From contig OZ116702.1 in NCBI GenBank assembly GCA_964199315.1, forward strand, positions 13,516,001 to 13,580,000: a stretch of 64,000 bases of DNA, written 5' to 3'. Origin of the DNA: Orbicella franksi. Taxonomy: Eukaryota. Below are positions 35,301 through 54,358 of this stretch, in pieces. The translations under genes were made by a program, and so were the position numbers. Below the pieces are notes generated by a model. That model ran no database searches and had not been told where the DNA came from. It saw nothing but the letters and a program-made list of their open reading frames with translations. Position 1 is the stretch's first letter. Every line of letters starts with the position of its first letter.

Positions 35301-35785
35301 GGTTGAAAATTTAATTACAATTAGGACTGCAAATCGTATAAAGAATAACAAAAACTTTGGCTCTTATAGTTGTGCATTTTTCTAGACTATTGTTATTATA
35401 ATTTTAACCCATGAGGTATTTTTGAGCAAATGACGTCATTTAATCCAATTCTCAACCAAGACTTGGAACAAGGAAAATTAATGACCGCCGTAAATTGTCA
35501 GACATAAATGTCCAAAAAACCCGGAGTTCTAATGTTCATAAACGACTGAGATTTGGCAAGATATCTAGGAAAGAACTATTGTGCACGGAAAAGTAAAAAA
35601 GCAATAGACATCGAGAAATCATGAGAAATGGCAATATGGTCTCAGGTATATTAAGGAGTGGGTCAATTCCGAAATTTCGTAAAACATAGAAAAAAAATTC
35701 TTTAAAATTTTTTGTTTACTCCTACAGTTCGTTTAATTGGTTTGAAAAAACTACAATTAACGGCCCTGTTGCCCAGAGATATTTG

Positions 35786-35799
35786 GTTGCCATGGTAAC
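35786..35799. promoter_or_regulatory. RFX X-box-like palindrome in the element's left subterminal region
   Basis: GTTGCCATGGTAAC matches the X-box consensus. Function untested. Confidence 0.3.
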
Positions 35800-36027
35800 C
35801 TGTCACATGGCTAACAGTAGTGTATTTATTGCACTAAAAAGATGGGTTAAATTAAGCCTTCTGCAGACTACCTTAGCCTGCATAAAATTGTGTAAAAATT
35901 ACCAAGTTGATAATTTAGACACCAGCAAATCTGAAACCAATTGGAACGGATGACCAACTGATGACATATGTTTGCCAGAAGTTTTCGAGTTCATGGTATT
36001 TCTGCTTAAAGCCACCCACAGACAAAC

Positions 36028-50100: not shown

Positions 50101-52661
50101 GGTGGTCCAAGTTAGACGCTGATCTTGAGCAGATTACCCGTGTATGCCTGCAGTGTTCCAAGACATGGAATGCACTACCTGCAGCACCCCTCTGCCCATG
50201 GACATGGCCCTCTGGCCCTTGGAAGAGTGTCCATGTTGATGTTGCCACTTCTGAAGGGAAAAACTACCTTATCTTGGTAAATGCGTACTCTAAATGGCCT
50301 GAGGTGGCAGGACCTATGAGAAGCACTGATGCAGCAGCTACTATCAGTGTCCTTTCCAACTTGTTCACCAGATATGGATTCCCAGAGCAAGCTGTCAGCG
50401 ACAATGGACCCCCTTTCAATCAAAAGAATATGGGGATTTCTTGAGCTCAATGGCATACAGCACGTCTTGGTGTCACCATACCATCCTGCTGCCAGTGGCC
50501 AAGCAGAGCGTTTTGTTCAAACATTCACGAAATTTCTGCAAGCATCAGAAGGAGATGGAACTTTACATCTGCGTGTCCAGAACTAACTTTTGTTGTTCAG
50601 CCCGTGCGGAATTTGAGGAAGGAGGTGATATGTAGTACATTGTATACAGCGGTTATTGCCATGTTCGCGTGCTCATTATGGTATTCTCTTGTGTCCGCCA
50701 TCTTGAGTTGCACGCATGGGTTCTTCCTCTCCAAAAACATAACAGGGGTGATATCACTTACTAAGATCTCCACATAGGCTAAGATCATTGTCTTGCAGGA
50801 AAAAAAAACATACCACAGACAGCTGTGAAAATAAATAATATAACAATTTTCATTTTTGCTTCACAAGATTACTTTGCAAGTGTAAATTAACAGGATTGAC
50901 CTTGTTGCTAATACTGACTAACCTTAAATGATGTACAAAGATTTGAGGATTAGTTCATACTACCCACTGAAGAAAAATAATTTGGGTGAGATCTTTCCAA
51001 TAATGGGCTATAATAAAGATGCTTGAAAAGCATAAAAATTACAGTTAACAGTACTACTTTAAAAATGACACAAGTACATAATATCAGACAAATTTGTATA
51101 ACTGGGCAAACCTTGAACAAATTTAATCAGCGAAAATTGACAATGTTGTCCTTACATGCATTCTAACAAATAATCTCTCAGTCAGCCATGTTGGCATAAT
51201 TTTATAGCCCTAAAAAGATTCCTAACCTTTCTTAAGACAAGTTTGATAGTCTTTCAGACACTGCATCACAAAGTCTCACTGATTTAATATTTTGCTTGCT
51301 TTTAGCCCTTAGGAAATCAGTCAGCATAATTTAGAAGATGCCAATAGCTCAGTGGATGTTTTTGGGGAAGGTATTTTTGGCATTTGCTCCAGAAGATTTA
51401 TAGAGGGATCACTGTTGCTGTAAAGCAATTTAAAGATCGTGTTTCTCTCTAACTTGTTGAGCATGAAGCTTCCATTCTTGCCAAAATGGAACATCCAGGT
51501 AATATGGGTTGTACATAACAGAAATGACTGGAGTGACAGTAATAATAATAATAAGAAGAAGAACTTTATTAAAATCTCCTCAGAAAACCTATTTACAAAT
51601 CTTCACACATTCCACTATCATAGACTAAAATAATAATAATAATAATATATTTCAATAGCGCTTATCCAGATCTGTTCAAAGCGCTTTACAGAAGTAAAAG
51701 AACTTAAAAGAAAGTCCTATGAGATAAAAATACAGAGTACATGCTAGAGCAGGTGGGTAGGGGAGAAATATTGTAACAGCAAAATACATATGGTCATCAT
51801 AATAATATACCAGTAGGCTGAGCAATTATAAACATTAAGGTACTACCATCTGATGCTTGCCCTCCCAGGAATGCTAACTCAGTTTTGTCTGAACTGTTGA
51901 AATAAAGAAAGACAAAAACTCAAGGTAGCTTCCCATGACTTTTTAGTGACTTAAAATTTTGAATTGGTGGTCTGATGTATAAGTGTCATTTACTAGCTAC
52001 AAATGACAGTCCTGGTTCTTGTTAGAATTTAAGTGCCTAATCCTCCAGTACATATGATCTTAATTCATGAATTTATTGTTTTCGTCACATAGGTTTACTT
52101 CTATTGTTTGGATACTGTATTGATTCCAGGCCTTTTCTCCTTATAACTCAATTTCACGGGTTAAAGGGTCACTGTGTGACGTTTACATCTCTAGTACTTA
52201 AACACAACCATCTCCAGAGTGAATGGTGCCGAATCATTTATGAGTGTTCAGATGCCCTAATATACATTCATTCCAAGGGATACCTTCATAATGATTTGAA
52301 GGGTGACAATGTGATAATTAGTGATGACAATAACACTCTACACCCTGTAATAATAGATTTCGGTAAATCAACAACACTGTCCAAAGGGAAACTCTAGAAA
52401 CTCTCACAGAGAGATCAAGACAAGTATAGGAAATACCATAAGCATAAAGCCATTGAAGTCGTCAGAGGAACTCATTCCCAATCTCAAGCAAGTGACATAT
52501 ACGTATGTGGACTTCTGCTGTCTTTGTTGTGCAAACATAAGCCATATGAGGCTCTTCGTAAATTAGCAGTGTGGTGTATTAAGAGAAACCCAGAGAAGCG
52601 ACCGCAAACACAGCAGTTGGCTACCGAGTTAAAAGCACAATATCAAGAGACAAATTTGTAA
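47141..52661 (+). pseudogene. Spliced HTH-like/basic N-terminus plus eukaryotic protein kinase domain gene (Gypsy 2 in intron 1)
   Basis: Exon to 47558 (phase 0) joins 51313-51498 (GEGIFG, VAVKQF, HEASIL), which joins in phase 1 to 52093-52661 (HNDLKGDN, DFG, AIE, SDIY, NPEKRP). Stops at ~51450 and 52395, frameshift at ~51395. Confidence 0.7.
47692..50744 (+). mobile_element. Internally deleted Gypsy LTR retrotransposon, 3053 bp
   Basis: 119-bp LTRs 47692-47810 and 50626-50744 (TG..CA, ~11 differences) and 5-bp TSD GGGGT. PBS-like TGGCGACGAG and PPT GAGGAAGGAGG. Gag (CLSCGKLGH), protease, partial RT/RNase H and integrase remnants. Confidence 0.92.
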
Positions 52662-54358
52662 ATTTCAACACCCTTAACCTTGCTCAAGTAAGCTCTTTTA
52701 TATTCACACAAATAAGCTTTCTCACAAATGCAGTTTTGAGTGACAATGAAGTTAAATATGTATTCCCCATTGTTTCTTCATACTTCAAAAAGTTACTGAT
52801 GGATAGCTTGTTCAATTCACTTCATGCTACACCTTGGAACAGCGTCAACTAGAATGCAGATATAGAAGAGAAACCCTCAATATGATGTGCAAAGTGTAGA
52901 AATTAAGCTTAGCTAAATATAAGTTACATCGATTGAAAAAATAAATGTTTACAAACTGAGCGAGCTCAGTCCAATTAGGGCTCGCTCACACCGCTGTCTC
53001 TGGCTTATTTTAAGAATTTTCACAAAGTTCATATTTTCTAGATTTCAAATACAAGTGAAACCCTTGATAGAAGGCAAACGTATAGAATTTCAGCTTAATT
53101 ATAAGTTAGGAATAAGGTTAAATAAACGCTTACACAACAAGTGAGTTCAGTTCACTTAGGACACGCTCACAGCGTTGTCTTTTTTATGTATCTTACCAGA
53201 TTTTGAAAATTTTCGAAAGACAAAATTCATTTAGGTTATGTTGGGTAAGCTTTGACAACACATAAACTTAAGTTTCTTGTTAAGCACTGAGCATCTCGAC
53301 AACACCATTTCAATGCGATAGAAGGAAAACGTTAATCAAAAGCAATGTCATAAATCACTGGTTACCTTAATCTAGAAGCCATCCAGTTGACCATGGAAGA
53401 CCAGCAAACCAAATGAAGCTAACTAAGACTGGTCGCGAAATAGGTTCAACAAATTCAAGATGGCGTACAAGATGTCCGCGAATAGCATGCAATTTCTAAG
53501 CATAATCTGACGTCACTATAGAAACACACGAGAGTAAACAAAAAGCCACGCGACGCTGCTGGGGGGTGAAAATCTTTCTTGACCCACTCCTTAAAATACT
53601 CAAGGTCGCCAAAGCTAGGCACACTATACAAAGTCTCTTTTGAGCTCTTTTAGGGGCTTAAAAGCAGCCTTTTCCCACGAGGCTTTACACACAATACAAT
53701 TGAACAATGAAGTTTTAGTTGAGTGCAAAAAAAATGGCGGCTAACAAAGTGTCTGAGTTTCGAGGTAAAAACCTAACTAATTTCTGGTACTTTTGCTCTG
53801 GTTTTTACACAACAAGATGCCAAATAGACGGAAAAATCAAACATATGTCGTTAATGTCTATAAAATTTGCTTTTATTTGGTGGTATTTTTGTATTGGTCC
53901 ATGACAACGTCGCTTGGTCCAAGGTATTTAAAGATGAAATACTGTAGTTTCACCACATGCGTTTGTTATTGACCGATCATGCAGACCATGCTGCAGACCA
54001 AATTTCAAGCTGTGTTTACTTTATTCCCTGACAGGCAATCGAAAAGCACTTGGATTTCCTCAAGAAACACTGTAGATTGTGTGGTAAAAGCTTAAAAAGG
54101 AATGGCAGAGAATATGGGAAGGAATTATTCGAAGCAGTTCTTAGTAGAAAGGTTCATGTTAACATAGCAAATACACGACTTTCATAATGGCGGATGGTGC
54201 AAGGACCTGGAAACAATTTTGCATGTAAACGAGGCCACAAAGGCCTCTCGAAGACGTAAACAAAGCGTGTATGAGGGCTTTAGGTTAAGTGTTGCCTTTG
54301 TGCGAAGACAATATCGTCAATTAAGGTCAATTACCGTTTAGTATACAGTACTTTAGAG

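Follow-up and report, generated by a model that had tools for sequence, protein, structure and literature searches.

The stretch of DNA analysed here, referred to as the window, comprises 64,000 nucleotides of the Orbicella franksi genome (GCA_964199315.1, contig OZ116702.1, positions 13,516,001–13,580,000, forward strand). Positions 35642–53603 of the window are very probably a single old and now dead member of a DNA transposon family of anthozoans that carries two genes, a transposase with a RAG1-like fold and a protein kinase. Intact members of this family are ~10–11 kb long, with imperfect inverted ends of ~25 bp and both genes on one strand. The window copy has decayed. It contains two nested long terminal repeat (LTR) elements, has lost most of transposase exon 1, and shows many frameshifts as well as five lesions in the kinase gene. 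The coordinates of all features are collected in Table 1.

The ends of the element are marked by the 12-mer GGAGTGGGTCAA, which has exactly two matches in the window, at 35655–35666 on the plus strand and at 53579–53590 on the minus strand (0.23 expected by chance). A TTAA lies outside both copies, the left one at 35651–35654, and these perfect 12-bp terminal inverted repeats with TTAA at each end are as described in the initial annotation, which was made from the sequence alone. The inverted repeat extends beyond the TTAA, over 21 nt at 95% identity, and over ~25 nt once other copies are compared. Such copies are available, as relatives of the N-terminal exon of the kinase gene occur among proteins from open reading frames (ORFs), and the coral metagenome contigs that encode them hold better copies of the whole element. 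Copies L001 and L002 are collinear with the window through the 5' end, the transposase, the kinase and the 3' end, so the two termini do not belong to separate miniature inverted-repeat transposable elements. Ends matching the terminal repeats of the window were recovered at the 3' side in L001, and at the 5' side in L002 and L012. A scan of metagenome contigs for TTAAGGAGTGGGTCAA gave mostly chance matches. The only real ones are L046, L102 and L103, and both L046 and L103 represent the window's own locus.

The kinase had been taken for the only surviving gene of the element's own. However, a degraded four-exon transposase gene is found by tblastn at 42447–46933. In L001 a single strand carries ORFs of 137, 190 and 774 residues, followed by the N-terminal exon, two kinase exons and the 3' inverted repeat. 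L002 carries the 5' repeat, an additional ORF of 237 residues, the N-terminal exon, and the three ORFs found in L001. The ORF of 237 residues is assigned as transposase exon 1, as it aligns with the N-terminal end of a Nematostella protein of 1227 residues (P0228). The fourth exon carries the second Asp, a CxxC, a SAP-like insert, an HxxxxH, the Glu and a C-terminal coiled coil, as seen in the family alignment. A fusion formed by splicing the kinase onto the transposase was also considered. In L001 the transposase ORF stops ~600 bp before the ATG of the kinase, so the two are provisionally treated as separate genes. None of the copies read has a Ulp1 fusion.

The transposase family is widespread in cnidarians. 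Searches of Pfam and of the sequences of solved structures with the transposase exons, the 774-residue ORF and a family profile return nothing besides the SAP-like stretch, and sequence likeness to RAG1 or Transib is not detectable, profile search included. The structure predicted by AlphaFold2 from an alignment of 25 sequences has a predicted local distance difference test score (pLDDT) of 76.8 and matches RAG1 in Foldseek with an E-value of 2e-8. In VIA-align the model superposes on the RAG1 core (~480–1004) with Z 16.7 over 435 residues at a root-mean-square deviation of 4.5 Å, followed by BbRAGL (Z 14.0), HzTransib (Z 11.4), the P element (Z 9.2) and Hermes (Z 5.8). As far as this model can be followed, the transposase is RAG1-core-like, at the level of the fold only. 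The conserved columns of the family are D...D, CxxC, HxxxxH and E, with an invariant Glu in the third catalytic position, and we presume that they parallel the catalytic triad and zinc ligands of RAG1. The family alignment shows them within the blocks WHDHSS, GDxPxxxFExG..CxxC and YFHxLxxH...NAExQERxF.

The second gene lies downstream of the transposase and in its intact form consists of three exons with ~375 codons. In L001 these occupy 4826–5202, 6721–6914 and 7373–7929 (377 + 194 + 557 = 1128 nt); their borders are AG/GT, the phases match, and all catalytic motifs are present (Gly loop, the Lys of VAVK, catalytic loop, DFG). Searches and folds were run exon by exon, and the gene model was checked by exon-length arithmetic and reading frame. 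Pfam Pkinase matches L001 with an E-value of 2.4e-17 and the window ORF at 52104–52397 with 3e-10; this ORF contains the HNDLKGDN and DFG motifs noted in the initial annotation. These matches place the gene in the protein kinase superfamily (PF00069), with the domain broken by stops and a frameshift in the window. Among solved structures, exon 3 is matched best by 3q5i (deposited as 'protein kinase') and the kinase domains of BTK and RIPK1. Compared with the intact L001 gene, the window kinase is, as read from its sequence, a pseudogene, disabled by two frameshifts and by three stop codons. Of the gene model in the initial annotation, the three-exon layout and the donor of exon 1 at 47558 stand, but an open gene with matching phases does not. 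The acceptor placed at 51313 falls on a TAG mutation, which is why the phases appeared to match; the conserved acceptor is at 51305/51306. Two side observations concern this gene in other copies. In L012 the kinase gene is followed by further incomplete copies of its last exon (16057–16668). In L001, ~1 kb of kinase intron 1 (5286–6272) is without counterpart in the window, contains a minus-strand ORF of 203 amino acids (aa), and is probably another small insertion.

The first kinase exon encodes a strongly basic N-terminal region, an extension of ~125 residues. A helix-turn-helix (HTH) had been proposed here and is not supported: the Pfam HTH_24 matches remain below cut-off in both the window (E 0.078) and L001 (E 0.013), and AlphaFold2 gives two long helices. 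In this model, built from an alignment of 6 sequences and of high confidence from ~residue 40, residues 1–11 are disordered (pLDDT <50) and the helices span residues 13–64 and 67–115. An N-terminus rich in Lys and Arg is common to related kinases of ~375–435 residues. The coral kinase is a small non-RD (HND) kinase of the Ser/Thr type whose N-terminus is extended by this long region, basic and helical.

The order transposase, N-terminal exon, kinase, all on one strand, recurs in independent copies and in diverged lineages. Three examples derive from coral metagenome assemblies: the full arrangement is present in L012 (~89–90% transposase identity to L001), three kinase exons in L140 (49%), and kinase exon 2 only in L134 (63%). 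In the sea anemone Actinostola (L135, ~57–58%) a kinase lies downstream on the same strand, and in the octocoral Paramuricea (L139, ~41–42%) a kinase gene is called downstream. A spliced gene model of Actinia tenebrosa at NCBI (XP_031552033.1, 'STY13-like') likewise contains homologues of all three kinase exons, joined together. In a kinase tree of 81 segments every element-linked kinase falls into one clade of 29 (support 94/81). The ratio of nonsynonymous to synonymous substitution rates (dN/dS) was estimated from L001 and L012 for the transposase (0.25), the N-terminal exon (0.37) and kinase exon 3 (0.21). Based on the recurrence of the pair and on the value for the kinase beside that for the transposase, the kinase is, at the level of these sequence comparisons, under purifying selection and a maintained accessory gene. 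The same-strand recurrence and this selection bear out the suggestion that a cut-and-paste transposon carries the kinase as a regular accessory gene. The initial annotation had also asked whether intact copies pair the kinase with a Kolobok transposase; the kinase is indeed paired with a transposase, but not with one of the Kolobok type.

Alternatively, the kinase could be a passenger, a captured host gene without any role for the element, as in Pack-type capture. The kinase family does occur in other contexts, for example in a 3.1-kb unit duplicated at 99.9% beside an unrelated 415-aa neighbour, and the kinase is missing from some relatives of the transposase. However, the gene is complete, has introns of its own, and keeps the same place and strand across 41–90% transposase identity, with the low dN/dS given above. 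The divergence of the kinase also roughly follows that of the transposase among stony-coral copies (kinase/transposase identity 92/89% in L012, 87/~80% in the window and 54/49% in L140), while the kinases of the anemone L135 (36/58%) and the octocoral L139 (30/42%) are more diverged. A mere passenger is therefore quite improbable. The duplicated unit is worth describing separately. It is found at L136:8928–12034 and L137:1–3107, is at least 3.1 kb long, and holds an intronless kinase of 435 aa that belongs to the same family and stands head-to-head with the 415-aa ORF, which is similar to the N-terminal portion of a kinase fusion of 974 aa (P0043). More than one vehicle may mobilize this kinase family.

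The exact extent of the mobile unit depends on how the TTAA is read. Directly outside the TTAA, TCAGGTATA is found in five independent insertions (the window, L002, L102, L142 and, with one base different, L012). Among the five 5' flanks, four agree fully over 9 nt and three of these over 10; AATACYCRA is common to both available 3' ends. Beyond these shared bases the flanks of independent insertions are unrelated. On the 5' side the next 4 nt read GGTC, GCAC, GGAC and GGCC, and at the 3' ends GGTC and GGCG, with L012 as the exception; five of the six ends are GC-rich (17 of 20 bases are G or C), in a region of ~38% GC. GGTC is present on both sides of the window element, and no 5-bp repeat fits at any offset. 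The shared bases outside the TTAA, together with GGTC on both sides, suggest that the mobile unit is most likely 35642–53603, with a 4-bp duplication and the TTAA internal. The sequence duplicated on integration is most likely not TTAA but 4 bp of a GC-rich target that resembles GGNC. The termini are GG...CC if placed at the TTAA, and T...A if placed where independent copies diverge.

The TTAA could instead be the true target duplication, with the ~9 shared bases per side forming a strict extended target of approximately CTCAGGTATA-TTAA-AATACCCGAG. This would account for TTAA at both ends, and for L138, a relative with a 39%-identical transposase, in which inverted repeats of at least 1.2 kb (3166–4350 and 14780–15980) begin exactly at TTAAGAGG without other duplication. 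However, the identity of the 5' flanks and the departure of both 3' flanks from the palindrome (A not T beside the TTAA) look more like common descent than target preference. The GC-rich next 4 nt and the GGTC duplication of the window also speak against a TTAA target, and no empty extended target CTCAGGTATA-TTAA-AATACCCGAG is present in the window. We regard a TTAA target as unlikely. The two possibilities differ in the empty sites they predict: ...CAGGTATATTAAAATAC... if TTAA is duplicated, and GGTC once, without the TCAGGTATA...TATACTCAA bases, if 4 bp are. Inverted ends were also searched for in the distant relatives L013, L135 and L139, where nothing convincing was found.

The original assignment was to a TTAA-targeting element of the Kolobok type whose sole remaining gene is an intact three-exon HTH-kinase. 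The perfect 12-bp inverted repeat, the TTAA on both sides and GG...CC ends fit the published definition of Kolobok (PMC9587614), and the repeats of L138 starting at TTAAGAGG favour the same assignment. However, a transposase is present and its predicted fold is RAG1-like. The published Kolobok alignment has a first Asp of the GDGxxDSPG type, DVWH (DxxH) after the second Asp, and a Glu of the HTGxLE type (PMC9587614), and in a comparison by eye with this alignment the blocks GDGxxDSPG, DVWH and HTGxLE are absent from the family transposase. Membership in Kolobok fails on the transposase because these blocks differ. In addition, the ~9 nt outside the TTAA are common to independent insertions, the kinase carries five disabling lesions, and no HTH is predicted. 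The Kolobok assignment is thus highly improbable, and an element with a RAG1-like transposase and an accessory kinase remains the preferred interpretation.

Several observations weigh against this interpretation or parts of it. No kinase is found within 10 kb downstream of the transposase in L013 (Nematostella) or L138, so not every member of the transposase family is accompanied by one, and in L011 (Actinia) the kinase lies on the strand opposite to the nearest transposase copy. The branching inside the kinase clade is unresolved, and a single acquisition of the kinase is possible on the basis of this tree. The GGTC duplication is seen on both sides in one copy only, and the ends of L138 at TTAAGAGG fit a 4-bp duplication poorly. 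No spliced joints over 47100–53099 were found in two sets of metatranscriptome contigs. Lastly, the function of the kinase is purely inferred. Two further observations touch on these loci. Contigs of one coral metatranscriptome library are nearly perfect matches to intron and exon-intron sequence at 47217–47742, 51074–51273 and 51779–52015, which suggests DNA carry-over or unspliced RNA. In L011 (Actinia tenebrosa, WAHB01001677.1) a kinase gene annotated as 'STY13-like' lies between opposite-strand transposase pieces of the window's family, and the annotation may have taken a transposon gene for one of the host.

RAG1 cuts antibody genes, and itself depends on a partner protein. By analogy with this reliance, the element could depend on its kinase, which would work in the nucleus and serve the element in trans. 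The kinase would phosphorylate the transposase, or host chromatin or DNA-repair proteins, and so allow successful excision, integration or repair. A broader and rather speculative proposal, to which we give little weight, is that anthozoan RAG1-fold transposases depend on a partner able to read or write protein marks. Here, this partner would be a nuclear kinase encoded by the element, which would gate transposition by acting on the transposase, or on the machinery of repair and chromatin, through phosphorylation. Such a kinase would be an independently evolved functional counterpart of RAG2 and its phosphorylation control.

Table 1. Features of the element and of its nested insertions in the window (positions 1–64,000).
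Feature	Position	Strand	Remarks
Candidate 4-bp target-site duplication GGTC, left copy	35638..35641	.	direct reading; equals 53604–53607
5' terminal inverted repeat TCAGGTATA-TTAA-GGAGTGGGTCAA	35642..35666	+	TTAA of the initial annotation inside; TCAGGTATATTAAGGAG... common to independent insertions
Nested Ty3/Gypsy-type LTR retrotransposon	36028..40683	+	LTRs 36028–36182 and 40529–40683 (155 bp, 97% identical); Pfam RVT_1, RT_RNaseH, rve
Foreign or rearranged CTAACGG-rich segment, 1.76 kb	40684..42443	+	no counterpart in L102 or L002
Transposase exon 1 remnant, last ~52 codons	42447..42599	+	tblastn with 237-aa exon 1 of L002
Transposase exon 2, degraded	43096..43474	+	tblastn with L001:355–765, 66–70% identity, two frames
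Transposase exon 3, first catalytic Asp (WHDHSS)	43789..44277	+	tblastn, 88% identity to L001:1000–1569
Transposase exon 4, several frameshifts/stops	44632..46933	+	tblastn to 774-aa ORF, L001:1889–4210, three frames
Kinase exon 1, basic helical N-terminal region (formerly 'HTH' exon)	47181..47558	+	+1 frameshift near 47455
Nested LTR retrotransposon in kinase intron 1	47687..50744	+	124-bp LTRs, 90% identical; GGGGT duplication
Kinase exon 2, Gly loop, VAVK	51306..51498	+	TAG 51310, -1 frameshift near 51391, TAA 51450
Kinase exon 3, HNDLKGDN, DFG, short C-lobe	52093..52649	+	TAG at 52395
3' terminal inverted repeat TTGACCCACTCC-TTAA-AATACTCAA	53579..53603	-	L001/window alignment continues to 53605
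Candidate target-site duplication GGTC, right copy	53604..53607	.	direct reading of sequence

Both nested LTR retrotransposons contain gag, reverse transcriptase, RNase H and integrase domains; the one in kinase intron 1 matches Pfam Retrotrans_gag, RT_RNaseH and Integrase_H2C2. The CTAACGG-rich segment between the first of these and the transposase stands where relatives have ~1.2 kb that includes most of transposase exon 1. Within it, CTAACGG occurs 19 times, always on the plus strand and often at a spacing of 21 nt, at 40684–40900 and 42122–42407 (2.5 expected by chance). TAACGG presumably resembles a Myb-type binding site. The arrays were considered as subterminal repeats bound by the transposase, and this idea was dropped as they are absent from related copies. 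Their absence there indicates that the segment is either foreign to the element or a local expansion.

Accessory genes on DNA transposons are already known; here, a kinase travels with a RAG1-shaped transposase. A literature search returned no description of a DNA transposon keeping a protein kinase of its own, nor of the pairing of a RAG1-shaped transposase with a kinase. L001 offers an intact gene pair on which to ask whether a transposon kinase controls a RAG1-type cutter or the host response to DNA breaks. In addition, the 'STY13-like kinase' proteins of sea anemones stand in a transposon context and may be transposon genes, in which case their annotation should be corrected.

The coral kinase shares the HxDLKxxN and DFG motifs with non-RD kinases of the tyrosine kinase-like (TKL)/RIPK-like type. 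It differs from these in having HND instead of HRD, in a C-lobe that is much shortened after SDIY..G, and in its N-terminal extension. Kolobok elements resemble the coral family in being cut-and-paste elements with a second protein, and in a TTAA beside GG...CC in the terminal sequence. However, the coral transposase is without Kolobok motifs and has a RAG1-like fold, and the TTAA lies within the shared ends. The accessory proteins described for Kolobok are KolX, a lambda-type exonuclease, RecQ, a His-Me nuclease and a DEDDh exonuclease, with no kinase among them (PMC9587614).

The closest likeness in predicted structure is to Transib and RAG-like elements (RAGL, ProtoRAG), as the catalytic core superposes on RAG1, BbRAGL and HzTransib. 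The insertion sites are GC-rich, and a partner gene travels with the transposase. However, the coral family differs from these systems in several respects. Its ends start with TCAGG or CAGG, not CAC, and no CAC heptamer-like ends are found in it: they read TCAGGTAT on one side and CGGGTAT/TGAGTAT on the other. The candidate duplication, known from one two-ended copy, is 4 bp and not the 5 bp of Transib and RAG-like elements, and the core contains a SAP-like insert. In place of a convergent RAG2-like gene, the partner in the coral family is a kinase encoded on the transposase strand. A GC-rich target has been described for both Transib and RAG, and occasional 4-bp duplications for RAG-mediated transposition (PMC1131882).

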